Virus record (IMG/VR): IMGVR_UViG_3300005289_000052
Coordinates: 62,001 to 126,000 of that record
Strand: one strand, 5' to 3'
DNA: 64,000 bases
Shown: piece after piece, positions 2,931 to 51,385 of the stretch
How positions within the stretch are numbered: the first letter of the stretch is position 1
Layout of the letters: each line of letters begins with the position of its first letter
The notes under the pieces: model-generated
The model's database searches: none
Seen by the model: the letters and a program-made list of their open reading frames with translations, nothing else
Told to the model about the DNA's origin: nothing
Made by a program: the position numbers and the translations under genes

Positions 2931-4481
2931 ATGGATGAAAAACTGCTATTGATACAGGTGATCACACTCCTGTATCGAGAAAGCCAACTAGAGACTCGGA
3001 ACTCAAACTCGAGCGAGCTGGCTGCCTCAGTTGTGGCCACTGTCCGTATCCCAGAAACGGCGATGGAGGCCGATCGCGGACGTGAATCTCTCAAGGCTTT
3101 GAAGAACACCGCATCAGCGATGATCTCTAATCCCCCGAGCCAGGATTATGACAGGACTATCCTGCTTCAAAAGATACGTGTAAACGTTGGGGACGAGGAC
3201 GAACTGTATCAGGCCTTCGAAGCTGCCACTCACCCCATTGACAATGAGGCTTGGCTCAAGAAAGCAATCTTAGAGTATCGTGCTGAACTGAACGCGTTCA
3301 TGAACCGTTTCCAGATCACCGACATTCTTAAGCAAGCTTATTCGGCTTCGACCTTTAACCCACATGGTGTTGACTGGAAGAATTTCGTCCACGATATCAT
3401 GGGTAGCCTCGAACCACTGGCTCAAACTCAGACGGTTGAACAGAACCCTGCAATTGTAGGCTCTGTAGACCTCGATGACGATGAAGCAGTGATGGCCCTG
3501 ATGAACCAGGCACAGGAAGAGCTATCGACCGCTGGTGTGCTTCGTACGGGCTGGCAGGGCGTTAACGCTATGTGTGGCGACCAAGACGGCTTCCGTCGTG
3601 GTGAGTTCATTCTGGTAGGTGCACTGCAACACAACTTTAAAACCGGCTTTACACTGAACCTGTTTAAACAGTTCGGCTTGTACAACCGACCGTACATGCG
3701 TGACCCGTCGAAGAAACCACTGCTCCTGCACATCTCCGCAGAGAACAACCTCATCGACAACGTTATGCAGCTCTACGTCTCTATTAAGGAGAACGAAACA
3801 GGCGAAGCAGTATCGATCCGTGGCGTGGATCAAGCAGAAGCTGCTGCGTACGTTAAGAGCCGCATGATGGGCAACGGGTACCACATCCGCATGCTGCGGG
3901 TAGACCCATCGATGTTCAGCTACCGCGACCTGTTCGACTTGATCACCAAGTACGAGTCGGAAGGTTACGAAGTACACGCTTGTGTGTTCGACTACCTGAA
4001 CATGATCTCGAAGAAGGGCTGCCAACAAGGTCCTCACGGCTTCGAGACTCGCGACCTCGTGCGTCGTGTGCGTAACTTCACTGCACCCCGTGGCATTACC
4101 TTCATTACTCCCCATCAGCTCTCCACGCAGGCTAAAGAGCTGGTACGGCAACAGATCGAGAACTTCGTTCAAGAGATTGCTAACAAAGGCTACTACGACT
4201 CCTGTCGGACTGTCGACCAAGAGGTGGACATGGAGATCTCGATCCACATCGAGAAATTCAACGGTGAGTCGTTCCTCACGATACAACGTGGTAAACACCG
4301 TAAGATCACAATCACCCCTGAGAAGGATCTGTACTGCGTCCTCAAGTTTGAGAAGATCGGTAACATCCCTGATGACTACGGTAAAGTGAACCGCACCTTG
4401 AGAAAGGTTGGTGGTCGGCCTGAGTCAGATGGTGGCAACGCCAATGTCTGGTGGGACTCGCAAGAAAAAGAAGCAGCATAG
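2931..4481 (+). CDS. dnaB: Replicative DnaB-like helicase (phiKZ gp118-like)
   Basis: GFRRGEFILVGALQHNFKT (variant Walker A), VFDYLNM (Walker B), TPHQLS, QRGKHR; start moved to ATG 2931 because the ORF-track extension overlaps the divergent gene. Confidence 0.85.
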   Translation: MDEKLLLIQVITLLYRESQLETRNSNSSELAASVVATVRIPETAMEADRGRESLKALKNTASAMISNPPSQDYDRTILLQKIRVNVGDEDELYQAFEAATHPIDNEAWLKKAILEYRAELNAFMNRFQITDILKQAYSASTFNPHGVDWKNFVHDIMGSLEPLAQTQTVEQNPAIVGSVDLDDDEAVMALMNQAQEELSTAGVLRTGWQGVNAMCGDQDGFRRGEFILVGALQHNFKTGFTLNLFKQFGLYNRPYMRDPSKKPLLLHISAENNLIDNVMQLYVSIKENETGEAVSIRGVDQAEAAAYVKSRMMGNGYHIRMLRVDPSMFSYRDLFDLITKYESEGYEVHACVFDYLNMISKKGCQQGPHGFETRDLVRRVRNFTAPRGITFITPHQLSTQAKELVRQQIENFVQEIANKGYYDSCRTVDQEVDMEISIHIEKFNGESFLTIQRGKHRKITITPEKDLYCVLKFEKIGNIPDDYGKVNRTLRKVGGRPESDGGNANVWWDSQEKEAA

Positions 4482-4492
4482 CCAAAACGAGC

Positions 4493-4550
4493 AAAAAAAA
4501 AGAGTCTAACGCGGACTCCAGAGTACAGAGACCCGAAGGTCTCTGTACTC
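4493..4550. terminator. Bidirectional intrinsic terminator
   Basis: Perfect hairpin GAGTACAGAGACC-CGAA-GGTCTCTGTACTC (4521-4550) with an A-run to its left, between convergent genes. Confidence 0.8.
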
Positions 4551-4555
4551 ACCCT

Positions 4556-4897
4556 TTATGCCCCTTCTTTACCAAGCTTCATGTGCAGGGCGAAGTATGC
4601 CTGGCGCACAGCGTCTTCCAACGTGTGAGACCAGACCGTAACTTCTTCATCGTCGTCATTAATCGGCAGACAGGTGATCTGTACAATGCGATCGACTTCC
4701 AACATTGCCTGAGCCACGTCGTCGGAGATCCCAGCGATCGTTTGTAGATGCTCGATGGCATCTTCAATAGTCGTGTTGGGAGCATCACGGTACTCGTTAA
4801 CCAGGATGGTCAGAGAACCCGAGGTGAGATCCTGGATGTCAGCCAGCATCACTTCCAGAGAAAGCTCAGGCGCTTCTGGAGCGCTGTTGTCCATCAT
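4556..4897 (-). CDS. Hypothetical protein
   Basis: 113-aa acidic ORF, coupled to upstream gene by 4-nt overlap. Confidence 0.65.
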   Translation of the reverse strand: MMDNSAPEAPELSLEVMLADIQDLTSGSLTILVNEYRDAPNTTIEDAIEHLQTIAGISDDVAQAMLEVDRIVQITCLPINDDDEEVTVWSHTLEDAVRQAYFALHMKLGKEGA

Positions 4898-5259
4898 TCT
4901 TCAGCACTCGCTTGACGGACTACTGTCGGACGCATGAAGATTTCCTCGAGGTAGTCGTTGGTTTCCTCAGCTTCTTCCAGCGAACCGGAATTGCAGAGGT
5001 AGTCCAGAACGCGGAAGGTGACATGGAAGGTATCGCCACCAGGCTTACCCTTGACCACATAACCCATGCCTTGCAGCTTCTTGATCATGCGCCCGATGCT
5101 GACGTCACGGATGCTGTCGGTCTTGGTCAGACCCCGCAGTTCAGCACGAGTGAATTCCAGGGTGATGTCGTTGGTGACGCCGAGTTTGATCAGCAGTTCA
5201 AAACGATCACACATCTTTTTGTTAACGTGGTCAGCCAGTGCTTTGGTGCTAAGAGCCAT
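4894..5259 (-). CDS. Hypothetical protein
   Basis: 121 aa; biased codons; part of minus-strand operon. Confidence 0.65.
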   Translation of the reverse strand: MALSTKALADHVNKKMCDRFELLIKLGVTNDITLEFTRAELRGLTKTDSIRDVSIGRMIKKLQGMGYVVKGKPGGDTFHVTFRVLDYLCNSGSLEEAEETNDYLEEIFMRPTVVRQASAEE

Positions 5260-5280
5260 TGTTACTTTCCTTCTGAGGAT

Positions 5281-5577
5281 TTACTTCTTCGGTTCAAGGA
5301 CAACGTATTCGCTGCCCCGTTTCTTTTTCAGGGTGTAGTTCCCTGGGATGAAACACAGGGCTTCGCTGGTGCTGATTGCTTTGCCCCGGCGAGGGACTGG
5401 CGTCGGTGTATCAGGGACAACCTCGAGGATCGCCGTGAACGTACGCATCATCGCCCCTTGAGGCAACAACATGTAGTAGGTTTCTCGAAGGGTGCCATGG
5501 CGCGGTGAGTGAGAGCTTTCGCTTTTCACCCATTCGTTACGAGGGAACTGTTCTTCCTCGTAAGTTTCACTGGACAT
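5281..5577 (-). CDS. Hypothetical protein
   Basis: 98 aa; 1-nt overlap with upstream ORF. Confidence 0.6.
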   Translation of the reverse strand: MSSETYEEEQFPRNEWVKSESSHSPRHGTLRETYYMLLPQGAMMRTFTAILEVVPDTPTPVPRRGKAISTSEALCFIPGNYTLKKKRGSEYVVLEPKK

Positions 5578-5849
5578 TACGGTTTGCCAGCAAAGTGTGG
5601 TTCCAGAATCCAGATTTCTTTTTCGTTCTCGGTGCCGATGTCGCCGTCTTTCACTTGACGGATCTTGACGTTCGGTACATAGACCATGCTTTCGCCGATG
5701 ATTGCTTTGTCACCGTGGACGCCGTGGTTGGCATACGTGGTGTTCTTGACGATGGCACCGTAGCCTGCGTCGATTGCTTCGACTTTACATTCGTCGTTTT
5801 TGGAAAGGACTTTCCAATGATGATTTGGATGATTAACTGGGTTTTGCAT
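5577..5849 (-). CDS. Hypothetical protein
   Basis: 90 aa; GGAGG RBS; first gene after early-promoter motif. Confidence 0.65.
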   Translation of the reverse strand: MQNPVNHPNHHWKVLSKNDECKVEAIDAGYGAIVKNTTYANHGVHGDKAIIGESMVYVPNVKIRQVKDGDIGTENEKEIWILEPHFAGKP

Positions 5850-5913
5850 ATTCGCCTCCTAAGGACTAAGTTTATAGAGAACAGTTTTAGATTAGTCTAA
5901 TCTGTTCACCTAG

Positions 5914-5930
5914 GTAATATACACTTGAGA
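5914..5930 (-). promoter_or_regulatory. Early promoter motif (TATATTAC)
   Basis: Minus strand TCTCAAGTG-TATATTAC; exact match to phiKZ early promoter core, upstream of an operon. Confidence 0.65.
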
Positions 5931-6124
5931 TTTATTTCATTCAGTATCTTTCTACTTTGTCCCTGTATGTCCAGAGTTTTGTAATTGCTTACATACCTGC
6001 GCTACTTTAATGAGAGCGATATGATATCGCCTCAGGGGAATAATAATCAACAACGCAACTAGGAAAACGTACCAATGGAAGCGCATAATGGCGAGTCCGG
6101 GGGAGCACGTCACCAAGGAGCAAG

Positions 6125-6502
6125 GTGGCGTCCATGGAATCTCGCATCGGTACATTAGCTGTAGATACACCCGCAACAAAAACTATAAACGCTGTATCGC
6201 CCCTAACGGGATGGCTTACTGATAGATTGGCTTTGGCGGTTGCAAGCTCATCAATGCTTCGACACCCCCTTCGCTACGTGGATCTGAAACACCGCGTCTG
6301 TGAACCAGCAACAGAAGATTGTCTCTTTGTCGAGTCGCCCATCGGGCACCACGAAGGAATCGTTCTGTCTATTCTGTCGGGTCCGTATCATCCGTTGCTA
6401 AGGCAAGTTTGTACAAATACCCGTAATTATGTGAGAGAGTTCCTCGAACTTTCACAACCGGTGTTCCCGTGGCCAATGGGCATAAAAGCCCAAATGCACT
6501 AG
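6125..6502 (+). CDS. Hypothetical protein
   Basis: GTG start with AAGGAG RBS 5 nt upstream; ends in a strong hairpin. Confidence 0.5.
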   Translation: MASMESRIGTLAVDTPATKTINAVSPLTGWLTDRLALAVASSSMLRHPLRYVDLKHRVCEPATEDCLFVESPIGHHEGIVLSILSGPYHPLLRQVCTNTRNYVREFLELSQPVFPWPMGIKAQMH

Positions 6503-6530
6503 CATCCTTCTTCGGAGGGATGCTAGTGCA
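6495..6530. terminator. Bidirectional hairpin terminator
   Basis: TGCACTAGCATCCTT-CTTCGG-AGGGATGCTAGTGCA between convergent ORFs. Confidence 0.8.
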
Positions 6531-6541
6531 GTCACGGTTCT

Positions 6542-6937
6542 TTATGCCGTCAGCTTCTTTTTAGGGATGCCAGCGTGTGGGAACAACCGCAGGGTAGTTG
6601 TGTACCCGTAAGTGTTACCACTGTAACCGTGGGTCTTTGGTAAATGTACCTCGAACACTGTAACACCGCACTCCTTGAACTTACGCTCCAAATAGGAGCC
6701 CAAGGAGACGATGAGGTCAATCTCTTTGTGTTCTGCGACCGAGTGTAGGTTGCCGTTCACCTCCATGTGGAAATATTGCTTCCGTGTTGCAAAACCATCA
6801 GCCTTCTGGTTATAGGAGAAAAACCCTACAGCGTCCATCCCCTGGTGATTGGGGGCTTCTGCTAACAGAATGATTTTGGTGTTGTCGGTTAAAGCCAGGC
6901 CTTCTCTACGCTCCACCGCTGCTTCAATGGTTGCCAT
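6542..6937 (-). CDS. Hypothetical protein
   Basis: Start at MATIE with GGAG RBS; 131 aa. Confidence 0.55.
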   Translation of the reverse strand: MATIEAAVERREGLALTDNTKIILLAEAPNHQGMDAVGFFSYNQKADGFATRKQYFHMEVNGNLHSVAEHKEIDLIVSLGSYLERKFKECGVTVFEVHLPKTHGYSGNTYGYTTTLRLFPHAGIPKKKLTA

Positions 6938-7079
6938 CTCTCGTACTCCATATCCCATTGATGACAAGAGAAACTCGGGGAGTTTTCTATTGTGTTAAGT
7001 GTTGGCAGTTACACCTCTGAAGTTTTGTTATTGGATGTTTCCTGCCGCGCGACGCTGAGCACGTCACACAATACGGGGT

Positions 7080-7574
7080 TTATGCCGTGAGTTGGCGCTG
7101 AGCCCACAACGACTCTTGTTCACGCTTTGCCGGATCGTTAGATGGCTCGGTGACATTGAAGGTGATCTGGTACAGCTTAACCGCGTTGTAGATGGTGTAT
7201 GCGGTCGTTTCAGGCACTTCGAGTACCTTCATAGCCTCAAGCAGAACCAGATCCGCCTGTGGCCTTGAGATACGTTTTGGCAAACCATCAACGGTAATCG
7301 ACAGATACTCACAGAGCATGTCGTGTACCACAGCAGCCTGACCATAAGCACCCCATGGTGGAATGATTGACCAGAAGGCACGAGGTACAGAAGCACCGTC
7401 CGTCAGATAGCCCGCAGGAACGTCGATCCATTGATTGCTACCCTTAGTCCCCAGGTAGTAACGAAACCCCTTCATAACGCGCCAGTAGTCCTTACCGAGG
7501 CGTTTGCTGGCTTCATGATCGTACGTCACCAACAGTTCAGCATCAAACTTTGTAAACCCTAGCAGTGTTGTCAT
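7080..7574 (-). CDS. DUF1353 family protein
   Basis: Signature VPAGYLTDGASVP...AAVVHDMLC. Confidence 0.8.
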   Translation of the reverse strand: MTTLLGFTKFDAELLVTYDHEASKRLGKDYWRVMKGFRYYLGTKGSNQWIDVPAGYLTDGASVPRAFWSIIPPWGAYGQAAVVHDMLCEYLSITVDGLPKRISRPQADLVLLEAMKVLEVPETTAYTIYNAVKLYQITFNVTEPSNDPAKREQESLWAQRQLTA

Positions 7575-7575
7575 G

Positions 7576-7674: not shown

Positions 7675-7713
7675 GGAACTTACCTCAAGTAAATAAAGAC
7701 ATAAGAATGGGGC

Positions 7714-7743
7714 AAAAAAAAAGGGAGGCCGAAGCCCCCCTTT
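7714..7743 (-). terminator. Intrinsic terminator
   Basis: GC hairpin with CGAA loop (TTCG on minus) followed by T9 on minus strand. Confidence 0.75.
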
Positions 7744-7745
7744 AG

Positions 7746-9373: not shown

Positions 9374-9445
9374 GTTTACTACCTTAATATGTCTTAGCTC
9401 TTCTTAGAGCAGGGATTAGAAGGGGACCCGAAGGTCCCCATGGAT

Positions 9446-18081: not shown

Positions 18082-18122
18082 AATTGATCTCCATAGATCG
18101 AAAGGTTAGGTAGCTCATTGGG

Positions 18123-18139
18123 GTAATATATACTTGAAA
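18123..18139 (-). promoter_or_regulatory. Early promoter motif (TATATTAC)
   Basis: Minus strand TTTCAAGTA-TATATTAC. Confidence 0.65.
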
Positions 18140-18290
18140 TTCAGTTGATTCCAGTCAGTCTAAAACTACATAGGTCCTGTCTCCTATGTCAGTTCCGCGT
18201 AGTGTTTTCAAACCCAGTTTTGAGAACCTAATGTTATAGTCACGGACAACTTAAAGTCCTTCGTACAGCCCAAAGTTCAAGGTTAGAACC

Positions 18291-20804: not shown

Positions 20805-20824
20805 GGGGCTCCTTCGGGAGCCCC
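20805..20824 (+). terminator. Hairpin between nrdA and nrdB (no U-tract)
   Basis: GGGGCTCC-TTCG-GGAGCCCC. Confidence 0.5.
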
Positions 20825-22248: not shown

Positions 22249-22514
22249 AAATCGGTGAGAACTCATTCGACATCATTCGTGGTCTTCGCATCATCTACGA
22301 GTGTGGTCATTACCCCATTCGTCCTGAACACCGTGATGGCGTCGTAACTTTTGAAGACGGTACGATGCGTTACTTCAAAATCATCAACTCTTTGTGTATC
22401 CCTGAGGATGTCAGCAAATTGTTTAACGTCCACGGTATTGGTCAGGCTATCGTAGCCCGCACCAAAGATGCTAAGAACCTGACTTTCTATTCTGAGAACA
22501 ACGGGTTCTGCTAA
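22245..22514 (+). CDS. Hypothetical protein
   Basis: 89 aa, last gene of nrdAB operon before terminator. Confidence 0.6.
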   Translation: MKIGENSFDIIRGLRIIYECGHYPIRPEHRDGVVTFEDGTMRYFKIINSLCIPEDVSKLFNVHGIGQAIVARTKDAKNLTFYSENNGFC

Positions 22515-22522
22515 CCAATAGC

Positions 22523-22556
22523 AAAAAAAAAAGAAGGGGTGCGAGCCCCTTCTTTT
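22523..22556. terminator. Bidirectional intrinsic terminator
   Basis: A10-GAAGGGG-TGCGAG-CCCCTTC-T5. Confidence 0.8.
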
Positions 22557-22568
22557 TATGCCGCCTGT

Positions 22569-23198
22569 TTAGGACGGCATCAGTTGACAACGGTGAGACA
22601 GGTAGTAGAGGTTCGGATCTCGATTTGGATGTTCGCCACGCAGGGCGATATTGAACCGCACACCTTCCACCCGCTCGATCTTGTAGGTGTGTCGCATGGC
22701 TTTCTGGAGACAGAGGATCAGGTTGAAGCAATCCTGTTTGTCCGAAGGCAGGCGAGAGAAGCCACGATCAATGTCGAGGAACTTCGCTAGGTGCGCAGCA
22801 GCCCAGTGACGAATGGTGGAGTCGTACTCCATGTCAGCGATTTCTGGGCGATCGGCACACAGGTAATCATAACCGTGATTCACGGCATCCCACGTAGCGC
22901 GACGAGGGAGCATTACGATGTGGTGATCGAAGTCGTCCTGGGCGTGGAAGAACGCACCACGAATGTGGATATTGCGGTTGGAGAGGCAGGTGGGGTAGCG
23001 ACGAATGTGGTTCGCCAACTCTTCTTCTACACGGGCCTGAACCCGATCAAAGGTGGTGACATTATGTACACGGGCCTCGGGCCGAGCCAACTTGTTGTAG
23101 TGACTGTGTAGTTCTGCTAAACGAGCCAGATCTATTTCGTTCAGGATGTCACCACCGTCAACAGACAGGGTGATGTCAACACGGTTAAAACCAGCCAT
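22569..23198 (-). CDS. Hypothetical protein
   Basis: 209-aa ORF. Confidence 0.65.
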   Translation of the reverse strand: MAGFNRVDITLSVDGGDILNEIDLARLAELHSHYNKLARPEARVHNVTTFDRVQARVEEELANHIRRYPTCLSNRNIHIRGAFFHAQDDFDHHIVMLPRRATWDAVNHGYDYLCADRPEIADMEYDSTIRHWAAAHLAKFLDIDRGFSRLPSDKQDCFNLILCLQKAMRHTYKIERVEGVRFNIALRGEHPNRDPNLYYLSHRCQLMPS

Positions 23199-25912: not shown

Positions 25913-25980
25913 CTACTTGACTCCCTTGAGTAACGGCATAGAGAGTGAGGCTACGTGGGCCTCACTCCTTTGAGCCTAGC

Positions 25981-26241
25981 TTAGGCCTGGACGCGTTCTT
26001 CCAGGCAGCCACTGCGCGGTGCCTTCTTGGCAGGCGCGTAGCTTGGGTGTTCCGAATCTTTCAGGCTACCGTCAGCCAGGAAGTTCAGCTTGGTGCCGAC
26101 CACGGTATCTTTCGGCAGTTGACCGTCGCCGATTTCCAGCTCGATCAGTTCGTTCGAAGGGTTCATGACGGTGAGCTTGGTACCAGCGACTTTAACGAAA
26201 GTCAGGACGGTGTCTTTTTCCAGCGCTTGGGACAATTTCAT
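25981..26241 (-). CDS. Hypothetical protein
   Basis: Start MKLSQ with AGGA RBS; follows early promoter motif. Confidence 0.6.
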   Translation of the reverse strand: MKLSQALEKDTVLTFVKVAGTKLTVMNPSNELIELEIGDGQLPKDTVVGTKLNFLADGSLKDSEHPSYAPAKKAPRSGCLEERVQA

Positions 26242-26290
26242 GAACAGCTTTCCTTTTCTTAAAGGTTTTAGGTTGAGGTATTGCACTAAG

Positions 26291-26307
26291 GTAATATGTA
26301 CCTCAGA
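26291..26307 (-). promoter_or_regulatory. Early promoter motif variant (CATATTAC)
   Basis: Minus strand TCTGAGGTA-CATATTAC in intergenic gap. Confidence 0.55.
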
Positions 26308-26312
26308 TTCTT

Positions 26313-27167
26313 TTAATTCGAGCTGACCGGATCTTCCTTCGCCAGATCTGGACGGTAGTTCCTTTGGATCAACTTGAACTTGAGGATACGACGAATCCCT
26401 TTCACTTCACCATTAGGATAGACCATCATCCCGGTACGCTCTGGATCGGTGTAACGGATGAACACCACGGGATGCTCATTACCTTCCTGAATCAAATCAC
26501 CTTCTTTGAAGTGGTCTGCTTTCAGGTACTCGTTGTATTCCCGAATGAGCTTCTCTTCCCGCTCTTCTCGGAAAGACTTGTAATATGGATCAGGCTCCCA
26601 ACTGGCGGACACGTTCGGGATGATACCGGCTGTCCCGTAGATTGCGTAATAGGTGTAGGCGTAGTAGTGATTTACGTCACGTGCCTGTTGATGCAACCCA
26701 ATGATCTTGAACGGCAGCTCTGGCCAACCCTTGTCTTCGGAGTGTCGCAGTTTATGGAACACCCCGGTGGTGGTCAGATAGATAGGATTGTTGGAGCGAG
26801 CACAGTGACCCAAGAACAAACGCTTACCACGGTACTCTTCCCGGTCTTTATCCATCCGGTGAAAGTTATCCGCCAGCTTACGATTGAACTCATGGTTGTG
26901 CAGGATCAGGTCGTGATTACCTGCGTCTATAAACTCTACCCGTGCCTTGGAAGGAATCTCAGTGGCAAAGTTACCCTCTCGATCCGGCATGAAGTAGTGC
27001 ATTCGATTTTCTTTGAAGTCGAACTGTGTAACGTAGTAGATCTGATCACCACCCAGTTCGGTAATGTCTTGGTGTACCCGAATGCGGACAAAGCTTCCAC
27101 ACTCTTTCAATTCACGTGCAGCTCGCCGCAAATCGTTCTTGAACAGTTGGTCCCACAGAGAGCGCAT
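26313..27167 (-). CDS. Hypothetical protein
   Basis: 284-aa ORF, AAGGAAGG RBS. Confidence 0.7.
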   Translation of the reverse strand: MRSLWDQLFKNDLRRAARELKECGSFVRIRVHQDITELGGDQIYYVTQFDFKENRMHYFMPDREGNFATEIPSKARVEFIDAGNHDLILHNHEFNRKLADNFHRMDKDREEYRGKRLFLGHCARSNNPIYLTTTGVFHKLRHSEDKGWPELPFKIIGLHQQARDVNHYYAYTYYAIYGTAGIIPNVSASWEPDPYYKSFREEREEKLIREYNEYLKADHFKEGDLIQEGNEHPVVFIRYTDPERTGMMVYPNGEVKGIRRILKFKLIQRNYRPDLAKEDPVSSN

Positions 27168-27212
27168 AAGTTTCCTTCCTTAAGGAGTGGCGGGGGAATC
27201 CCCCGCCTGAGT

Positions 27213-29762: not shown

Positions 29763-29778
29763 TAAGGTTCAATCGAGC

Positions 29779-29808
29779 AAAAAAAAAGAGGGGTGTTAGC
29801 CCCTCTTT
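29779..29808 (-). terminator. Intrinsic terminator
   Basis: AAGAGGGG-TGTTAG-CCCCTCTT plus A9 on the plus strand (T9 on minus). Confidence 0.8.
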
Positions 29809-29817
29809 CTTATGCCG

Positions 29818-30435
29818 TCAATCCAGGATGTCACCGATCGCATCACCAATGTCACCCAACACCGAACTGTTGGATTGATTACTGGGTTTGCGATTCCAAC
29901 GGAACCAATTCTTGAAACGTTGCCAACGACTGAGAGGTTTTGGTGGCGGTTCATGCTTCTTCACGAAATCATCCCACAAGATCAATAATTGGTCCCCTTT
30001 CAAGAACCGACAATCAATGTGACTAACAGTCAACATCGGAATGTGTGCCATCCCACTGAACGCAATCGTTACGGTTGACCCATAGCGATCCTCGTCTTCT
30101 ACCATCACCAACATCTTCCACCCAGTGACATCGATGTAAGACATGGCTTGGAATTCAACTGGATGTTCAAAGTCCCATTTCCAGTCGCCCGCTTTCAAAG
30201 CAGGGTAGTGGTCAGGGAATTGCTTATAGATGCCAAGGAGTGTCCAGACGACACGCATGACATCTACTTGCTTGAGATAGTACACACCGACGCGTTCGTA
30301 TTGGTGAGTAAGTTCCCTCACTGTCTTTGTGTGGCGGATCTTGATCTTTGTCAATGTACGATCCCCGGTCTTTGTGTGAAGTTGCACATCCAGATTAACC
30401 AGAGGCACATCTCCGCGATTCCAAGACTTAACCAA
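29818..30435 (-). CDS. Hypothetical protein
   Basis: 205 aa; start uncertain. Confidence 0.6.
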   Translation of the reverse strand: MVKSWNRGDVPLVNLDVQLHTKTGDRTLTKIKIRHTKTVRELTHQYERVGVYYLKQVDVMRVVWTLLGIYKQFPDHYPALKAGDWKWDFEHPVEFQAMSYIDVTGWKMLVMVEDEDRYGSTVTIAFSGMAHIPMLTVSHIDCRFLKGDQLLILWDDFVKKHEPPPKPLSRWQRFKNWFRWNRKPSNQSNSSVLGDIGDAIGDILD

Positions 30436-32094: not shown

Positions 32095-32120
32095 CTGAGG
32101 ACTCCTAATAAAGGCATAGC

Positions 32121-32139
32121 CGGGCTCCCGAAGGAGCCC
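32121..32139 (-). terminator. Hairpin terminator after ATP-grasp operon
   Basis: GGGCTCC-CGAA-GGAGCCC. Confidence 0.6.
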
Positions 32140-34135: not shown

Positions 34136-34381
34136 TCAAGTAGCCATCGGAGAGATTGAGTCAATGACGATTACTGCTTGTCCTGGCTCTTTCAACTTTT
34201 GGCGATAGACTCGAAGAAAAGCTTCGGCGTCAAATGGTGGTTGGTTCGCAAACCGTTGGCTCATACGTTCCAGTACCTCAGCAGTGTGCTGTGGCGTGGT
34301 GTCGTAGAAACCAGCAGTGATATCCACCTGCACTTGATTCTTGCGCCCAGTATTTTGAAACAGATCGATGACCTTCGACAT
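34136..34381 (-). CDS. Hypothetical protein
   Basis: 81 aa, TGATG coupling to thyA. Confidence 0.55.
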   Translation of the reverse strand: MSKVIDLFQNTGRKNQVQVDITAGFYDTTPQHTAEVLERMSQRFANQPPFDAEAFLRVYRQKLKEPGQAVIVIDSISPMAT

Positions 34382-36069
34382 CAGACGGCTGCCTTGGGGA
34401 ACTCGATTTTTCCAGAATGCTTATACCCAACGATCTCGATGTCTTCCATTTTGAAATCGAAGATGTTCTTGATGTTGGGGTTCAAACGGATGGTTGGACG
34501 GGAATCTTCCACAGGCTCCTGATCCAACCACTTGAGTACCGCAGGCCACTGGTTCTCGTAGATGTGGCAATCGCCGCCGGTCCAAGTGAAGGTATCGGCG
34601 GCGTGACCAGTTACTTGAGCAACCATGTGAGTCAGCATTGCGTATTGTACAACGTTGAACGGATGACCCAGCGGTACATCGTTACTGCGCATGTACAGAT
34701 GCGACGACAGCTTGCGGGTCGGGACCTTGGCATCGTCCAAGAACTGGAAGACTTCAGGATGACGCTGGAACTCGTGTTCGTGACGACGATCATCGTGCAT
34801 CACGGCCATGTTCAACACTTCTTCGGACATATGCTCGAAGCCAGCAGGCTTGTACGTACCCAGCCACTCCAGTCGCTCACGCACCGACATCGGCTTGGAG
34901 AAGAACTGACAGAAGGTGTGGCAAGGACGCAGCGCCATCTCTTCCAGCTCAGCCACGTTCCATGCGGTCAGGATGATACCCCGATCGTCAGGATTGTTGA
35001 TGAGTTGGTCGATGATCTTCTTCACCTGGTCGATCTCGCGACTCACGACGTAGGTTTTACCCTTACCATGAGTTTCGATGTAATCGCTGGAGATCTCACC
35101 GTGGAAGTCATACCCATGTTCAGACAACACGCGGTATTCTTCCTCGCTCACCAAACGAGTGTCATTCCAGTAGCGCCACTGATGCTGGTAGATCTTCGGC
35201 AGTTCGCCAGCAGTGATGGTCTGCGTAGCGATGTCCTTGGACTCCGCGAAACGGTAGAACAGTTCGAACAGCGGAGAGTCTTCAGGCAGCGTTTTCACGA
35301 TGGCTTCAAACAACGGGAGCAGCCACTTGTTGTTGGTGGAGCGCTCGTCGGCCAACAACTCACGGATAGCCGCCGCTGACTTCCAGCGAGTATCTTCGAC
35401 AAAGACCATGACGAAGTCGCGCAACAGGTTTGCCTGAGCAAACGCGTTGAGCAATTCACCCCAGGTGAGGTGACGCCATTCGGCAGTCGTCGCCTTGACC
35501 CACGAATCCCAAATACCGATGTTGTGCTTCTTGAGGAAGCGAACGTTGGTATCGCCCGACAGCATCCAGAGCAACTCGCCCTTGATGCCGAAGTTCCAGT
35601 TGAACTTGGTGGAGATCGACGGCAGTTGACCCATGGAGATGTCCACGGTGTAAGACTGCGAGTTGATCGCACGGGAACGCACCCCGGTACGAGTCTCACT
35701 GTCCACACCCTGCTCCATGATCTTGAGCACCAGCTCGCGGACGTGGTAATCCACGTTGTACGAACTAGGGTCTGGCAAACCAATGATGGCTTTCCCTGGA
35801 GACCACTGGCGCTTCATGCGCTGTTCCAAACGCCACAGCTTGGCCGAAACCTCAGGACGGAACTCGAAAGGAATCCGAGCGTTGTCCAGAGCGCAGATAG
35901 CGTCACCTACCTGCATCGGGTCGTTCAAGTCAGCTAAACACGCTTGGTAGTTACCCGACTCGGCCAGTAACGACATACGCTGGGAGAAGGAATAGAAGTT
36001 CAGCGAGCTGTTGTCGTGATCTTCAATCAGCTTGCGCGCAGTGCGCATACGTTCGTTCAAGTCTTTCAT
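34381..36069 (-). CDS. thyA: Thymidylate synthase (with extensions/insertions)
   Basis: GELLWMLSG, IWDSW, MALRPCH (catalytic Cys), MRSNDVPLGHPFN, GDCHIYENQ. Confidence 0.93.
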   Translation of the reverse strand: MKDLNERMRTARKLIEDHDNSSLNFYSFSQRMSLLAESGNYQACLADLNDPMQVGDAICALDNARIPFEFRPEVSAKLWRLEQRMKRQWSPGKAIIGLPDPSSYNVDYHVRELVLKIMEQGVDSETRTGVRSRAINSQSYTVDISMGQLPSISTKFNWNFGIKGELLWMLSGDTNVRFLKKHNIGIWDSWVKATTAEWRHLTWGELLNAFAQANLLRDFVMVFVEDTRWKSAAAIRELLADERSTNNKWLLPLFEAIVKTLPEDSPLFELFYRFAESKDIATQTITAGELPKIYQHQWRYWNDTRLVSEEEYRVLSEHGYDFHGEISSDYIETHGKGKTYVVSREIDQVKKIIDQLINNPDDRGIILTAWNVAELEEMALRPCHTFCQFFSKPMSVRERLEWLGTYKPAGFEHMSEEVLNMAVMHDDRRHEHEFQRHPEVFQFLDDAKVPTRKLSSHLYMRSNDVPLGHPFNVVQYAMLTHMVAQVTGHAADTFTWTGGDCHIYENQWPAVLKWLDQEPVEDSRPTIRLNPNIKNIFDFKMEDIEIVGYKHSGKIEFPKAAV

Positions 36070-37577: not shown

Positions 37578-37631
37578 TACATTTAAATCAGGGCATAAAG
37601 GCAGGCCCGAAGGCCCACCCCTATTTAACGC

Positions 37632-39905: not shown

Positions 39906-39923
39906 AGAACCTCCGAACATAAA

Positions 39924-39943
39924 AGGCAGGCCGAAGCCTGCCT
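39924..39943 (-). terminator. Hairpin terminator after Nampt-like gene
   Basis: AGGCAGGC-CGAA-GCCTGCCT. Confidence 0.65.
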
Positions 39944-39955
39944 CTATGCTGTTAC

Positions 39956-41914
39956 TTAGTAGGTGGCACCGCCGAGACGCTCACGGATTTCACCGAGAGT
40001 GGTACGGTTGGTGAAGTGACTGTTCTTGAACACGGAACGCAGTTCGCCCGACGAAGTAGCCAGGGTATCGAACGACATGTCCTGTTCTTGAGACAGTACG
40101 TAGTCATCTTCTACCAGGTCTACACGCAGGAAGCCTTTCGCAGACTTCTTGGCAGTTTCGCCTTCGGTGGCTGGCGCTTTGTACAGGTCGATGAGAGTAT
40201 CTTCGATCTGGATCGCAGTGCCTTTGATAGCCTGGCCGAAAGTGTCGCGAGTGATGTACTGGTAGGTGTAGCTACCGATACCGAGTACCACGTTGCCCGA
40301 AGCGAAGGCTTTCTTCGCCAGACGACGCATGATCTCTTCGGTGCGTTGAACAGTGATGCTGTCACCGTAGATCAGACCGATGTGTTCGTCCAGCAGACGG
40401 TAGCCTTCCATGGTGGTGGTGCCACCGAAGGTTTCCCACAGGCATTCCACAGCGCCTTTCTCTTCTGGGGTCAGCACGTGCTCCACGATGTGGTAGCCAC
40501 ACTGGTAACGACCGGTCAGATCGTATTCCAGCTCGATCTCCAGCGACTTGAGGAAGCCGTAGATCATTGGCTTCACTGGGTCGTGGACTTCGGTCGGCAG
40601 ACGCTCAGGCGACAGATGACGAGTAGCAGCAGTCATGCCCTGGAAGGAGTCGACCACAGTACGACCAGCACGCTCGAGGATCGCCGCATCCAGTTCAGCC
40701 CACGAACGGTTACGATTGCGATTGATCGAATCGGTAGCACGCCACAGCTTGTGTTCGCGATCACGGAAGTAGATGTGCTTGCGACGACCGTCAGCAGGAC
40801 CACGACGGTACATCATTTGCTCAGCTTCTTCTTGGGTGAAGATCTCAGCACCACAGATGATCTCAACCGGATCACCCGAGTCAGGACGGATCACGACTTT
40901 GGCCAGACCGAGGCTGTCTTTCGGACGCGACAGGATCACGTCTTTCAGTTCAGGAACGATCTTGGTGACGACGCCCCAGAAGTCAAACGAGTCCGACACC
41001 AGAGCCACAGCACCGTTCGGGTAGACCTCGGTGATCAGACGCTTGAAGAAGCGCTTCTCGGCTTCCAGGCGCATGCGCTTGTAGCCTTCCTCGTCGACCT
41101 TCTGGTTTTTCTCTTGAAGCTGTTCGAGTTCGAAGTGCAGCTCGGAGAGGATGTTGGCCGTAGCAACGGCGTGTTCGGTAGCCGGAATCGAGCAGGCCAC
41201 GAACTCCTTCTCTACGTTCGCGCCGTAGTAGTCTTCGGCGTAGTCGATCGCAGGGATGGTGTCGGTACCGCAGAAGCTCAGCAGGTGACCGAAGGAACCA
41301 CGCACGTCTTCCAGACCGATGCCACGGAACGAGAAGTCGTGACCCTGGACGTCAACGAACTCTTTCGGAGTACCGGTGACTTGAGCCCAGTGTTTCAGGA
41401 CACGACGGTATTCGAAAGCGATGGTCGAACAGGTGACGATTTTCCAGATCAACGCCGACATCGAGGTTTCGAGGTAGTTCGTGAACCAGTAGAAGTCAGG
41501 GTGCGTGTTGTAGATGGTGTACAACGGCACGTTCATGTTGACACGTGCACCTTCCGGCAGCGCCAGTACTTCGATCGGCAGGTAGCCCAGGTCGTGCAGA
41601 CGCTCGAAACCATCAACTGGAACCTTGCCTTCGCCGAGGTAGTAGTCCATGCGGCGCTTGTAGCGCTTGATGACTTCATCTTTCGGCTTGGAGAAGAAGC
41701 TGCGCTGCCACAGCTCGTTCAGTTCTTGCAGGATACCTTGCAGACCAGCCCAGACCACCTTGTGATCCCAGAACTGCGACTTCGATACGGAACGCTCGAA
41801 CAGGCGATCAGCACGCGCCGTCAGGTTCCCGTAGGTGAAGTTGGAGCCTTTCGGGAACATTGGGCGGTGGCCGACTTTGTAACCGTCACAAACGTTGGGG
41901 GCAAACAGGTTCAT
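39956..41914 (-). CDS. nadV: Nicotinamide phosphoribosyltransferase-like protein (Nampt/Namat)
   Basis: DGYKVGH, HDFSFRG, GTDTIPA, IPATEH, VSDSFD, IRPDSGDP, GLIYGDSIT, GIGSYTYQ, KKSAKG. Confidence 0.92.
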   Translation of the reverse strand: MNLFAPNVCDGYKVGHRPMFPKGSNFTYGNLTARADRLFERSVSKSQFWDHKVVWAGLQGILQELNELWQRSFFSKPKDEVIKRYKRRMDYYLGEGKVPVDGFERLHDLGYLPIEVLALPEGARVNMNVPLYTIYNTHPDFYWFTNYLETSMSALIWKIVTCSTIAFEYRRVLKHWAQVTGTPKEFVDVQGHDFSFRGIGLEDVRGSFGHLLSFCGTDTIPAIDYAEDYYGANVEKEFVACSIPATEHAVATANILSELHFELEQLQEKNQKVDEEGYKRMRLEAEKRFFKRLITEVYPNGAVALVSDSFDFWGVVTKIVPELKDVILSRPKDSLGLAKVVIRPDSGDPVEIICGAEIFTQEEAEQMMYRRGPADGRRKHIYFRDREHKLWRATDSINRNRNRSWAELDAAILERAGRTVVDSFQGMTAATRHLSPERLPTEVHDPVKPMIYGFLKSLEIELEYDLTGRYQCGYHIVEHVLTPEEKGAVECLWETFGGTTTMEGYRLLDEHIGLIYGDSITVQRTEEIMRRLAKKAFASGNVVLGIGSYTYQYITRDTFGQAIKGTAIQIEDTLIDLYKAPATEGETAKKSAKGFLRVDLVEDDYVLSQEQDMSFDTLATSSGELRSVFKNSHFTNRTTLGEIRERLGGATY

Positions 41915-45744: not shown

Positions 45745-45748
45745 GGGA

Positions 45749-46464: not shown

Positions 46465-46471
46465 AGGTACC

Positions 46472-46950: not shown

Positions 46951-47000
46951 TTTCTTTTGCTTCCTCAAGCATAGAAGGGCTCCCGCAGGAGCCCGAAAGG

Positions 47001-47480: not shown

Positions 47481-48418
47481 TAGCGATTTCCTTTATTGTC
47501 GCCCGGTTCTTCAAATTCGTCCACCAAATGCGGACAGTCGTCGTAGCTGAACTCTTCTTGTGGCTCAGGAGGGAGTTCATCCTCATCACCATCCATAAAC
47601 AACGGGTACTCCTCGTCAATCAAAACCTCTGGGTTCCTGTCGAGGTGAGCAGCCACGTGTAGGTGACGGTACAACGGAGGCAAGAAGCGAGCGTAACGTT
47701 TGACAATCTCATCGCCCATATAGCGACGGAAGTTCCACGTGAACAGGTAGTGTGCCAATTTCCTAACTGACTCAACTCCCGCTTCTTTAAAGCTTATACT
47801 CTTGGCTCTGTTCAGATGGAGCACTTCCCGCCAGAACAGACCAAAGGCTAGGTGATACTCTTCCCAACTCATCTTGCGAGGATAGTGATCTACCCCTGCT
47901 TGGATGTGTTCGTTATTGTAATCCTTCAACAAATCTTCCAACGCATGTAAGCACGCGGTGTTCTCATTGAAGAAGTAGTTACGACCAAACTCAGCACCCA
48001 TCAGCCCGTAGTGTCCGGGTGCAGTGCGAGCCAACACATCTTTACGGGCCTTCTCTTCCTGCTGTTGCTCCATCAATTTCTCATGGACCTTGCGAGCTTC
48101 CAGAACATCTTTGATTTGATGTTCCTTCACAATGCAAGACTTGGTGATGTCAGCAGGCCCAGGCCACCCTAGGGCTTGATAGACCAACGACGAAGCATCA
48201 TCGTAGTCAACCTTAAGGTCTCGCCAAACGTGGTGTAGCAAGCGCCCAAGGAGCGTTGCCGAGATGTATTTCCTACTACGGATTTTGTCCAGTACCTCTT
48301 CTACCGCAGCCTTGTCGATGTGGGGCTCTAACACGACGTTGCGGAACTTGGATTTCTTTACTACGTGCGACTTGCCGGGACGCAGATAAAATACAGGTTG
48401 GTTCTTCTTTGAGCCCAT
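47480..48418 (-). CDS. Hypothetical protein
   Basis: 312-aa ORF. Confidence 0.7.
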   Translation of the reverse strand: MGSKKNQPVFYLRPGKSHVVKKSKFRNVVLEPHIDKAAVEEVLDKIRSRKYISATLLGRLLHHVWRDLKVDYDDASSLVYQALGWPGPADITKSCIVKEHQIKDVLEARKVHEKLMEQQQEEKARKDVLARTAPGHYGLMGAEFGRNYFFNENTACLHALEDLLKDYNNEHIQAGVDHYPRKMSWEEYHLAFGLFWREVLHLNRAKSISFKEAGVESVRKLAHYLFTWNFRRYMGDEIVKRYARFLPPLYRHLHVAAHLDRNPEVLIDEEYPLFMDGDEDELPPEPQEEFSYDDCPHLVDEFEEPGDNKGNR

Positions 48419-48466
48419 GATGTTCCATTCCAGATAGATGCGGGTCTCCGAAGAGACCCTAGAGAA

Positions 48467-49117
48467 TCATTGTTTGGTCAGCACAGCTTTACGAGCATCT
48501 CGCTCTTTCATTTGGCGGTCGATTTGTGCATGGAAGTGATCTGCCATGAACTTACCTTCCTCGAGACGCATCATCCGATTCCAAATCTCTTGGGCTACAG
48601 TACCCTCGAAATCTTCTTCGATGTTGAAGAAGGAACCGATGGAGTACAGCAGGTGCTTGTACACCTTCACCATCATACCCACTTCTTTACGCAGGATATC
48701 GGCCACCTTGTCAATAACGAAGTGGTCAATGTCTTCGATCATCTTGGCCAGACGACCGGTTGCGTAAACGCCTTCACGAACACAACGCTGGAGACTCCAC
48801 GTGTCATCACGCTCCCAGCATTCTTCTGCACGGATGTTCATCGTGTTGAACATAGACAGGCTAACCAACAACCCATCCAGACAACGACGATAGATAAACG
48901 CTACCGTAGCATCCCAATCACGCGAACGAGCATTGACAGCCTCTTCGGAATTATTGGCAAGATCCAGCAGGTAGATCGTTTCCATCAACTGTGCACTGTA
49001 CTTGACGTGGTGTAAAGTCAAGTGCTCCAACCGACGATGACGACCCAGCTTATAGATGTCATCGTGGAAGTATTGATCGTGTAGTTCTTGGCGGAATTGC
49101 AGACGATTGAGATCCAT
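48467..49117 (-). CDS. Hypothetical all-alpha protein, possible MazG-like nucleotide pyrophosphatase
   Basis: HD..HDDI..L...RL.HL.LH..KY pattern; 2 nt downstream of dcd. Confidence 0.4.
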   Translation of the reverse strand: MDLNRLQFRQELHDQYFHDDIYKLGRHRRLEHLTLHHVKYSAQLMETIYLLDLANNSEEAVNARSRDWDATVAFIYRRCLDGLLVSLSMFNTMNIRAEECWERDDTWSLQRCVREGVYATGRLAKMIEDIDHFVIDKVADILRKEVGMMVKVYKHLLYSIGSFFNIEEDFEGTVAQEIWNRMMRLEEGKFMADHFHAQIDRQMKERDARKAVLTKQ

Positions 49118-49119
49118 CG

Positions 49120-49941
49120 TTACATCCTCGGGACAACAACCCCTGTTTGACCTTGGTACTTGCCCCCACGGTCTTTATACGAGGTTTCACACGCCTCGTC
49201 AGACTCGAGGAACAACATTTGTGCAACGCCTTCGTTGGCGTAGATCTTGGCCGGTAGGTTGGTAGTGTTGGAGAACTCCAGCGTCACGTGCCCTTCCCAC
49301 TCAGGTTCCAACGGGGTCACGTTAACGATGATGCCGCAACGAGCGTAGGTCGACTTACCCAGGCAGATGGTCAAGACGTTCCGTGGAATGCGGAAGTACT
49401 CAACCGTACGGGCCAGTGCAAAGCTGTTCGGTGGGATAATGCAAACGTCGGACTTGATGTCCACGAATGCCTTCTCATCGAAGTTCTTCGGATCGACAGT
49501 TGCCGAGTTGATGTTGGTAAACACCTTGAACTCGTCAGCACAACGCACGTCGTAACCGTAGGAGGAAGTGCCGTAGGAGATCTTGACTTCTTCCATCCAC
49601 AGCTCGCCGTCGCGGGCTACGACACGATAACCTGCTGCTGGTTCGAGGACACCTTCGTGGAACGCATCGCACTCTTGGCGAGACAGCTTACGAGGTCCAC
49701 CACCACGGACCTGACCGTATTCGAACGGCTCGATCATTGGCTTGAACTTGTCGAAGACCTGATCGTTTTCCTGCAAGCGCCATGCCCAGAAGCTGTTCTC
49801 CAGCGAACGCAGTTGATCTGCGGTGTGTGTGATACCTTCCCACGCCAGCTCTTTCATTTCACTGGAGCCCGGTCGGACATACAGCGCATGGGTTGGTGGT
49901 GTGGACATACGACGAATCCACTTGTCCGATTTGATGCTCAT
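49120..49941 (-). CDS. dcd: dCTP deaminase with two N-terminal insertions
   Basis: [55 protein letters not shown]. Confidence 0.95.
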
Positions 49942-50546
49942 TGAAAGAGTTCCTTGACCGCATTTTCGAGGGTGAGGGATGGAGTTACGAAAGCCACGAT
50001 ACCTTCTTTCTTGGCGAAAGTCAGTAGGGTTTCTTTAATTTGTGGCAGGGGTTCTTCCGGGTGGAAGCTCAAGAGCACAACAGACGAATTGTGGTCGTCG
50101 AGGATCTCACCGATCAGATCCGCGTCGTGTTCCAGCTCTTCGAATACACCCTCGGTATTAGCGTGCACTTGTTCGATGTCTTCGAAGGTGATATACACCG
50201 CCGTGGTATCTTTGGTGTCGAGCGCACGTTTATACGCATCGAGCAACAAACCCTGTTGTACAGTTTTCATGACGGTGCTCCGGTGGTTGAGGTAGTCGTA
50301 CGTCTCTTCTTCAATCGGCCACAAGGCAGACTTCGGGAAAGGGTAAGCGCTGCCATCAGGAAGCTTGGTGATGTAGAGACCAGACTTCAAAAGCTGGGTG
50401 ACCAGCAGATCCTGACCAATGAAAGGACGAGCGTCAGGGTCGATGCCGTGATCACCACCGCCACCCATGTTGTACCGCTTACCGATTTCCAACGGGTTGC
50501 CACGAAACAGTCGCTCCTGCTCGCGGCTCATAGATAGCTTAGCCAT
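49938..50546 (-). CDS. Hypothetical protein
   Basis: 202 aa; ATGA overlap with dcd. Confidence 0.65.
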
Positions 50547-50931
50547 GTTCTTTATTACCCTCAGTCAGCTTTTCGTAAAGCTCTTTCAGATCAGTGTACA
50601 AGATTTGAGTCTTGTAACCGGTGGCGCGGAACATCTCTTTCACCGTTTCGACCAGTTCTTCAACCGTGGTTTCACTCCCCAAGGAGACGGCACGATAGTA
50701 GACTTGGTGGCGGGAGAAGCTGTGGTGCATGTCGCGAGGATTGATGCCTTCGTGATGACAGGCCGAATCAACACGTTCCTTGAAAGGAATAACGGCGTCT
50801 TCCTTGTTCAGCGTCAGGAAGATTACGCTAGCGAAGTTGGCATCATTGGCAGTCGTTATCGACTGGCGCAAACCGCCAAAGTGGACCACGATCGGGAAGT
50901 CGAAATCTTTTACTGGGGAGGTTGTGAACAT
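50539..50931 (-). CDS. Hypothetical protein
   Basis: 130-aa ORF. Confidence 0.6.
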   Translation of the reverse strand: MFTTSPVKDFDFPIVVHFGGLRQSITTANDANFASVIFLTLNKEDAVIPFKERVDSACHHEGINPRDMHHSFSRHQVYYRAVSLGSETTVEELVETVKEMFRATGYKTQILYTDLKELYEKLTEGNKEHG

Positions 50932-51338
50932 TGAGGCCTCGGTGCGTAACCAATGTTGTCGAACATACCGGCGACATTAAGATCGTCGGTGAAGAAGTAC
51001 ACGTCGTTGTCGGGGAAACGTTCACCCCATTGCTGCATACCAATGAAGGTCATGGTCGGACCGTCATTAACCACACCACCACCATCGAACTCCTGATTGG
51101 TCCAAGCTCGACCAAAGCTGATGTTGTTCTCAGCGGTGAAGGTATCCCAGTCGATACAGTTCTCTTCCCGCACAATCTCGATGGACTTCTCCCAGCGTTC
51201 GTCAAGCGTATTGGAGGTATCCAGACCCGTCACAAACTTACAGCCTCCACCCACAGGTGGATTGTGAATAATGAATTGCATCATCTCCACTACAGTTCCC
51301 TTGTACAGCTTTACGTTTTCAGGCAAGGTCCGTTTCAT
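50910..51338 (-). CDS. Hypothetical protein
   Basis: 142 aa; GGAG RBS. Confidence 0.6.
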   Translation of the reverse strand: MKRTLPENVKLYKGTVVEMMQFIIHNPPVGGGCKFVTGLDTSNTLDERWEKSIEIVREENCIDWDTFTAENNISFGRAWTNQEFDGGGVVNDGPTMTFIGMQQWGERFPDNDVYFFTDDLNVAGMFDNIGYAPRPQCSQPPQ

Positions 51339-51385
51339 TTATAACTCCGGGCATAAAAGGAAGAGGGGACCGGAGTCCCCTCGGG

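Follow-up and report, generated by a model that had tools for sequence, protein, structure and literature searches.

The DNA considered here is a stretch of 64,000 nucleotides (hereafter the window) from IMG/VR virus record IMGVR_UViG_3300005289_000052, where it spans bases 62001-126000 of one contig, 243,669 bp long, whose guanine-plus-cytosine (GC) content is 52%. Between its genes lie GC-rich inverted repeats followed, on one or both strands, by a short tail built around TATG, and these hairpin-tail elements are the subject of this study. The genes of the window include one for a DnaB-like helicase (phrog_3213) and, adjoining it, one for the major capsid protein, which matches phrog_3231 (E = 7e-189). 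Just beyond the window, in syntenic position, lies a homologue of gp123, the beta-like subunit of the non-virion RNA polymerase (nvRNAP) of phage phiKZ, recognized by its match to phrog_2943 (E = 7.5e-152) and 33% identical to phiKZ gp123 itself (E = 8e-101). The helicase-capsid-gp123 synteny is kept, as in phiKZ, Xoo-sp14 and Goslar, and the nearest capsid relatives in the phage collection are those of Xanthomonas jumbo phages, at ∼44% identity. An earlier, sequence-only reading of the window had taken the phage to be phiKZ-like, a premise that proves right in view of the capsid match, the gp123 homologue and the synteny: as judged from these genes, the genome is that of a phiKZ-like jumbo phage (a chimallivirus), gp123 being the polymerase subunit that was searched for.

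The same reading had observed that TATG(CC) motifs flank terminator hairpins in both orientations, and proposed that each such cassette could stop one transcript and start another. When the sequence is read back, the plus-strand copies that it listed are all present (TTTATGCC at 4555, 6541, 7079 and 22555, TTATGCC at 29810 and TATG at 39945), as are four minus-strand copies (GGCATAAA at 6479, 37592 and 51350, GGCATAG at 32113); four other minus-strand copies are looser (GCATAG at 4477 and 46969, CATAAA at 39918, and GACATAAG at 7698, which lies 14 nt beyond a run of nine T). TATG is, as stated there, the core of the phiKZ late promoter, where nvRNAP initiates at the G; initiation needs all four bases, although they do not suffice for it (Yakunina et al. 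2015, PMC4666361).

Elements combining a hairpin with such a tail have also been described at mapped transcript ends. In phiKZ, 61 termination sites identified by ONT-cappable-seq share a stem-loop and a TTAT region, with the consensus 5'-BCCYCCCCHWWDGGGRRGGBYTTATKYYGT-3', and six bidirectional terminators are located between convergent genes (Putzeys et al. 2024, PMC10914365). In phage 201phi2-1, Motif A, found at 59 termination sites, resembles the phiKZ terminator motif, and terminators that combine two motifs, and thus have a longer stem, were the strongest in an in vivo reporter assay (PMC11512511). The two reports place RNA 3' ends at the motif in both phages, and show that such elements terminate transcription in reporters (PMC10914365, PMC11512511).

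In order to establish how the motif is distributed in the present phage, hairpins were identified genome-wide, a strong hairpin being defined as a perfect stem with dG <= -10, and each was classed by its neighbouring genes in a map of 242 genes produced by a heuristic codon-usage caller. The sequence-only reading had suggested counting TATGCC near hairpins against a shuffled genome, and this comparison gives a divided answer. Overall over-representation can be rejected, as the window contains 17 copies of TATGCC, compared with 16.7 +/- 4 in dinucleotide shuffles; what is enriched, therefore, is not the abundance of the motif but its position. Of 59 strong perfect-stem hairpins in the genome, 48 are intergenic, and TATGC is found in 42 of the 118 tails of perfect-stem hairpins, where ∼0.5 would be expected (binomial p ∼1e-67). 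Conversely, a stable upstream fold (<= -12 kcal/mol within 45 nt upstream) accompanies 52/61 intergenic TATGC[CT] copies, against a background of 18% (p ∼1e-29). By itself the four-base match carries little weight, since TATG occurs 723 times on the two strands of the genome.

The anatomy of the elements is likewise constrained. Stems are 7-17 bp long, and the first T of TATG is most often 2 nt from the end of the stem (22 of 57 tails), the distance lying between -1 and +4 in 47 of the 57. The tail consensus is YY-TATG-C-C-G-T-y-A, with pyrimidines at -2 and -1 and, downstream of TATG, C in 78%, C in 69%, G in 67% and T in 56% of tails; it is equally conserved with or without a converging gene downstream. 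Most motif tails contain 2-4 T, broken by the A, and so fall short of a canonical U-tract (>= 5-6 U in 8 nt). True poly-T tails are present on 12 hairpin faces, and at some sites a T run and the motif are merged. An Rfam search of the window returned no family match.

The orientation of the motif relative to genes points to a role at transcript ends. The motif is carried on 44 of 67 hairpin faces that have a same-strand gene ending just upstream, compared with 10 of 55 that do not (Fisher p = 1.7e-7), and poly-T tails show the same bias, with 11 faces that have a gene to terminate and one that has none. Among 16 convergent sites, TATG is found on both tails at 10, ATGCY on both at one, and TATG on one tail with poly-T on the other at four; in tandem arrays of minus-strand genes the motif is on the sense tail only at 11 sites and on the antisense tail only at one. 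Late promoters would be expected upstream of same-strand genes, divergent regions included, but a same-strand gene lies downstream of only 16/57 motif tails (41/57 lack one), 32/57 run into a converging gene from its 3' side, and the 17 divergent, promoter-only intergenic regions (3.9 kb, both strands) contain no TATGC[CT], whereas an even spread of the intergenic copies would have put 6.5 there (P = 0.0014). Given this gene-end bias, the paucity of downstream genes and the absence from divergent regions, the motif behaves like a terminator signal, not a promoter.

Comparable tails are found in other phages. In scans covering 42-50 kb pieces of each genome, TATG was present in 23/58 hairpin tails of phiKZ (4 expected), 16/82 of the Xanthomonas jumbo phage Xoo-sp14 (1.3 expected), 22/86 of LucasX, likewise a Xanthomonas jumbo phage (2.7 expected), and 12/58 of RSL2 (1.6 expected), and the profile recomputed for phiKZ, Xoo-sp14 and LucasX is alike, TATG-Y-Y-G-T beginning 1-2 nt past the stem. 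The elements described here share with the phiKZ and 201phi2-1 terminators a GC-rich stem-loop (arms of the GGGAGG/CCTCCC type are common), followed 1-2 nt later by YTTATKYYGT, an intergenic position 3' of genes, bidirectionality between convergent genes, and flanks whose pairing can lengthen the stem; those phages, too, are chimalliviruses with their own multisubunit RNA polymerases. A difference is that the tail, TATGYYGT in phiKZ, is fixed here as TATGCCGT, because of the 52% GC content of this phage, and that TCTATG and CTTATG variants are common. Canonical Rho-independent terminators similarly combine a GC-rich hairpin with a tail that forms a weak hybrid, and in their bidirectional versions a 5' complement of the tail provides both bidirectionality and a longer stem. 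About a dozen of the canonical poly-T kind occur in this genome, some merged with the motif (TTTTTATGCC), whereas the tail considered here is specific, 2-4 U broken by A and then a conserved GCCGU, a conservation that a plain U-tract does not show.

On these grounds we consider it probable (roughly 80%) that the elements are phiKZ-type intrinsic-type terminators, consisting of a GC-rich hairpin and the conserved tail YY-TATG-C-C-G-T, so that the part of the sequence-only reading that took the hairpins for terminators is borne out by the gene-end bias of the faces and the match to the phiKZ consensus. Elements of this kind are already known from phiKZ and 201phi2-1; the present phage is another bearer of the conserved tail. 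Neither the exact stop-codon registers described below nor the spread of the element to Xanthomonas and Ralstonia jumbo phages is mentioned in the available parts of the two earlier studies.

Genes are packed tightly against the elements, and the claim that the motif dictates gene ends is borne out: it lies at the stop codon of 40 of the 242 genes, 26 of which use one of two exact registers. In the first (13 genes, including the helicase gene and two genes ending in LTA-stop) the stop is the TAA or TAG inside GCA-TAA; in the second (13 genes) a TGA or TAA directly abuts CGGCATA. The helicase TAG, for example, is part of the GCATAG at 4476-4481 that the sequence-only reading had placed at 4477, and the outer bases of the motif supply the stops of the minus-strand genes 29818-30435 and 39956-41914. 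Paralogy does not account for the two LTA-stop genes, which encode unrelated proteins, as had been noted. Because TATGCCGTYA is conserved even where there is no converging gene, the outer motif bases appear to have been co-opted as stop codons, and their conservation is not a mere by-product of stops.

The elements of the window are listed in the table below, together with the copies of an early-type promoter motif to which we return later.

Table. Predicted terminators, a related gene-end copy and early-type promoter motifs in the window (window coordinates).
Feature	Coordinates	Strand	Hairpin and tail	Gene context
Terminator A	4521..4562	+	13-bp hairpin 4521-4550, then ACCC-TTTATGCC (tail 4551-4562)	ends plus-strand DnaB-like helicase gene 2817-4481; convergent genes
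Terminator A2	4490..4519	-	hairpin 4519-4501, then T run and GC	ends operon starting at early-type promoter near 5920
Terminator B	6479..6552	both	long hairpin, 16-bp core 6495-6530; outer stem GGCATAAAAGCC (6479-6490) pairs with TTTATGCC region (6536-6548); minus-strand tail TTTTATGCCC; plus-strand tail TTTATGCCGTCA	minus-strand tail ends gene 6542-6967, TAA stop inside motif; no plus-strand gene upstream of plus-strand tail
Copy at 7079	7079..7086	+	TTTATGCC; no strong hairpin, gene-end copy only	overlaps stop of minus-strand gene 7080-7574 (ACG GCA TAA)
Terminator D	7696..7743	-	hairpin 7743-7720, then T9 run; degenerate CTTATGTC 14 nt further	
Terminator E	22514..22566	both	bidirectional; hairpin 22528-22557; plus-strand tail TTTTTATGCCGCC; minus-strand tail T10-GC	between convergent genes; plus-strand tail ends nrdA-nrdB-89 aa open reading frame operon; minus-strand tail ends operon with last gene 22569-23198
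Terminator F	25929..25967	-	hairpin 25967-25943, then TCTATGCCGTTA; absent from the sequence-only reading	ends gene 25981-26286, first after early-type promoter at 26297
Terminator G	29772..29820	both	hairpin 29785-29808; sense (-) tail, T run then GC; plus-strand face, full CTTATGCCGTCA	TCA of plus-strand face is stop of minus-strand gene 29818-30435; no plus-strand gene upstream, antisense-facing copy
Terminator H	32110..32139	-	hairpin 32139-32122, then GGCTATGCCTTT	tandem minus-strand array
Terminator I	37588..37624	-	imperfect 13-bp hairpin 37624-37595; 3' arm continues into TTTATGCCC	
Terminator J	39910..39955	both	hairpin 39924-39943; sense (-) tail TTTATGTTCGG; plus-strand face CTATGCTGTTA	plus-strand face points antisense; its TTA is stop of nicotinamide phosphoribosyltransferase (NAMPT) gene 39956-41914
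Terminator K	46964..46994	-	hairpin 46994-46977, then TTCTATGCTTG	tandem minus-strand array
Terminator L	51345..51382	-	hairpin 51382-51363, then TTCCTTTTATGCCCGG	tandem minus-strand array
Early-type promoter	5900-5952	-		
Early-type promoter	18109-18161	-		
Early-type promoter	26277-26329	-		

Seven further TATGCC-type copies (4596, 5730, 18529, 25631, 27396, 44073 and 45631) are within coding sequence, with no strong perfect-stem hairpin alongside, and look like chance occurrences. Four other hairpins of the window (9422-9439, 20805-20824, 27189-27207 and 48442-48459) are strong, intergenic and GC-rich, with neither a TATG nor a poly-T tail on either strand; these could be RNA-stability or processing elements, or attenuators.

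How such an element would act can be outlined as follows. A GC-rich RNA hairpin would be followed 1-2 nt later by the tail, located on the strand that is transcribed and past the end of the gene whose transcript it stops, where it would replace, or merge with, the U-tract. The tail may first provide a weak, rU:dA-rich hybrid and then a pause at a U-to-G step, with the phage's own RNA polymerase possibly recognizing it. In the consensus elemental pause of bacterial polymerases, the Y(-1)G(+1) portion is similar to such a step. Convergent genes would need a tail on each strand, which is why GGCATA is found 5' of hairpins, the whole forming a long imperfect palindrome, ACGGCATArr-stem-yyTATGCCGT. 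At the few co-directional sites that carry a 5' copy, the element would most likely be a bidirectional terminator, guarding against read-through from the antisense direction; where TATG itself forms the sense tail (6479-6548 and 39910-39955), the 5' copy could also lengthen the stem, as predicted folds pair it with the sense tail. The stem extension that the sequence-only reading had kept as a fallback is closer to the truth for the 5' copies. The close packing of genes places their stops (TAA or TAG inside GCA-TAA, TGA or TAA abutting CGGCATA) within or against the element.

Two regularities of the tails may be recorded here. The tails on the two sides of a bidirectional element regularly differ, one reading CTTATG and the other TCTATG (outside the window, for example, at genome positions 2613, 5780, 17879, 23261, 126652, 143165 and 210487, and also at Xoo-sp14 34787-34808), so that an A-C mismatch and a G-U pair separate the core stem from the flanks that pair outside it. 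The asymmetry recurs in Xoo-sp14 and, as TTTATG/CTATG, in phiKZ, and may keep the core hairpin distinct or avert a perfect long palindrome. In addition, four poly-T terminators have a further TATG(C/T) copy 2-14 nt past the T run (for example, a T run followed by GCC-TTTATGCC), at 4476-4500 and 7696-7719 of the window and at genome positions 147953 and 222464, an arrangement that looks like both tail types in tandem.

Several observations weigh against identifying the elements as terminators. Termination at this phage's own sites would be argued by analogy with its relatives, and in the 42-kb regions sampled the TATG tail was found on 0/30 hairpin tails of Goslar and 2/36 of pEa_SNUABM_54, so that some members of the family may lack it. 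Because the gene map comes from a heuristic caller, a few assignments of context may be wrong. Nine or ten copies are on faces without a gene to terminate, three of them in the window (6541, 29810 and 39945); these need a secondary explanation and are best read as antisense backstops or stem extensions. Finally, to judge from their position, the TATGs at 16 tandem sites, which precede a same-strand gene, may have a promoter role. The sequence-only reading had regarded the plus-strand copies as antisense throughout, which is true of the three copies just named and not of those at 4555 and 22555, which follow plus-strand genes (the helicase gene and the nrdA-nrdB-89 aa operon, respectively). Coding scores are negative for the plus-strand open reading frames (ORFs) that precede 6541, 29810 and 39945, and these copies therefore face antisense; scans of the small ORFs around the sites at 6.5 kb, 29.8 kb and 39.9 kb against PHROG gave no matches, the strand context there being provided by codon-usage scores. 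An antisense promoter role for these three copies, although conceivable, is not required by any observation.

A refinement of the terminator explanation, which we regard as unlikely, holds that the polymerase recognizes the tail through the pocket with which it binds its promoters. During elongation, the non-template T(-3)A(-2)T(-1)G(+1) would enter the beta-lobe pocket of gp123 in the register of a late promoter, the enzyme would halt a few nucleotides past the hairpin, and the hairpin would release the RNA, the U-tract being replaced. The four invariant bases of the tail are indeed the promoter core that the gp123 beta-lobe binds in the non-template strand, as seen in a structure of the promoter complex, and a sigma-like subunit is integral to nvRNAP (PMC12809450). 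The spacing to the hairpin is fixed, and the motif recurs in phages whose GC content ranges from 38 to 58%, which favours recognition by a phage component over simple base composition; among the papers searched that mention nvRNAP, terminators and TATG, none connects the tail with the promoter core. According to the authors of the structure, however, the pocket is incomplete in the transcribing complex (PMC12809450), and conservation of the tail reaches CCGT, past the four bases that the pocket would hold. Operons with early-type promoters, presumably transcribed by the virion RNA polymerase (vRNAP), also end at these tails, and the terminators of 201phi2-1, whose Motif A is similar, also stop the host RNA polymerase in reporter assays (PMC11512511). 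Covariation between the pocket and the tail was sought in seven phages and did not help, since the core residues are conserved in all of them, Goslar and pEa_SNUABM_54 (sampled regions without the tail) included, and the comparison therefore does not discriminate. A variant combining such built-in recognition with restart, in which the tail would pause the polymerase and, at some tandem sites, the enzyme could re-initiate at the G, coupling termination to a new transcript, seems to us similarly doubtful.

Returning to the terminator explanation proper, the proposal it has chiefly to be set against is that of the sequence-only reading, namely that the hairpin stops one transcript and TATG starts the next at its G, the antisense copies silencing early genes late in infection. 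TATG with G as +1 is necessary for initiation by phiKZ nvRNAP (PMC4666361); the four bases are the same as those of the phiKZ late promoter, 5'-T(-3)ATG(+1)-3', and the gp123 homologue that would read them is present here, with 9/14 residues of the TATG pocket kept. The next same-strand gene follows the G at the 16 tandem sites, at a distance of ∼15-45 nt where the spacing was read (window 32113, 37592, 39918 and 51350), and there are a few antisense-facing copies that have no gene to end. Nevertheless, the counts given above speak against transcript starts: the face bias (44/67 against 10/55), which is the same as that of poly-T tails, the 41/57 copies without a same-strand gene downstream, the 32/57 aimed at the 3' end of a converging gene, and the lack of any copy in the 17 divergent regions, where promoters must be. 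Mapped phiKZ late promoters show no conservation beyond TATG (PMC4666361, PMC7598289), and the validated promoter P119L has an AT-rich upstream region, no hairpin and no CCGT, yet hairpin-less copies here make up only 9/61 of those in intergenic regions. The hairpin-tail sites are a different population from late promoters because of the GC-rich hairpin 1-2 nt upstream and the conserved CCGT downstream; mostly, moreover, they have no gene downstream. A hairpin stem rich in GC and positioned at about -5 to -25 would span bases -8 to -11, the stretch at which the transcription bubble of the phiKZ promoter complex opens (PMC12809450), so that melting would be disfavoured. The phiKZ study also reports, alongside 61 terminators of this type, only four antisense RNAs with a defined transcription start site (PMC10914365). 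Dual cassettes are accordingly quite improbable, and an antisense shut-off of early genes by the plus-strand copies is not supported.

Least credible of all is a role outside transcription, whether as an element acting at the level of DNA or bound by a protein (for example, a site for a phage DNA-binding protein) or as a mobile palindromic repeat (for example, one like an uptake sequence) whose hairpins are incidental, as might be suggested by the palindromic flanks, by at least 8 near-identical copies of ACGGCATAGA-GGGAGGCC...GGCCTCCC-CTTATGC in both orientations, and by one copy, ATGCCGTCTG, that resembles the Neisseria uptake sequence. The uptake interpretation is rejected, as the consensus TATGCCGTYA differs, only 1/57 tails reads GCCGTCTG, and the signal is oriented by strand and gene; more generally, copies are at gene ends and nowhere else, stems vary in sequence with pairing kept, the tail in tandem sites is conserved only on the 3' side, making the signal strand-specific and tied to gene orientation, and published 3'-end mapping accounts for the motif (PMC10914365).

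Promoters in this genome appear to be marked by a different sequence. An unbiased k-mer scan of upstream regions gave, as the strongest signal in the genome, a ∼40-nt consensus, ...AAATCTCA-N5-ATATTACC-N3-GTGAA..., with 13 intergenic copies genome-wide, all on the minus strand. These head operons, lying 11-93 nt upstream of the nearest minus-strand gene in 12/13 cases and 552 nt upstream in one; a degenerate copy is present in the divergent region 53746-53837. The consensus fits the AT-rich early-promoter type of jumbo phages with their own polymerases (PMC7598289), and is probably an early (vRNAP-type) promoter. The minus-strand early operons of the sequence-only reading are thereby recovered in part, some of them starting at this motif. 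Tail type does not divide cleanly by promoter class, as both TATG and poly-T tails are found at the ends of operons with early-type promoters.

Between terminator B and the early-type promoter, the stretch 5950-6477 (∼530 nt, 48% GC) has no ORF with a positive coding score (a 125-aa plus-strand ORF at 6125-6502 scores -34 and has no PHROG match), and could be a non-coding RNA or regulatory region. Two minus-strand genes of the window appear longer than their families would lead one to expect. The NAMPT gene (39956-41914) encodes 652 aa, compared with a profile of 500 positions, and residues ∼328-468 are not covered by the partial-family matches, so that an insertion may be present; in the thymidylate synthase ORF (34381-36069; 562 aa) the family match begins at residue 104, and 279 profile positions are spread over 458 residues. 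This suggests extra sequence in both proteins.

For annotation, the hairpin followed by YYTATGCCGT marks the ends of transcripts of this phage reliably and in a strand-specific way, and seems to do the same for relatives with only ∼44% identity in their capsid proteins. It helps to define operons and to tell terminators from promoters, which have a different motif, around ATATTACC. That a sequence-specific tail is kept across hosts, and in genomes ranging from 38 to 58% GC, points to a dedicated termination signal for the polymerases of chimalliviruses, of use in engineering these phages. The identity of the tail core with the late-promoter core may, in addition, hint at how termination works in a polymerase of which a sigma-like subunit is an integral part.

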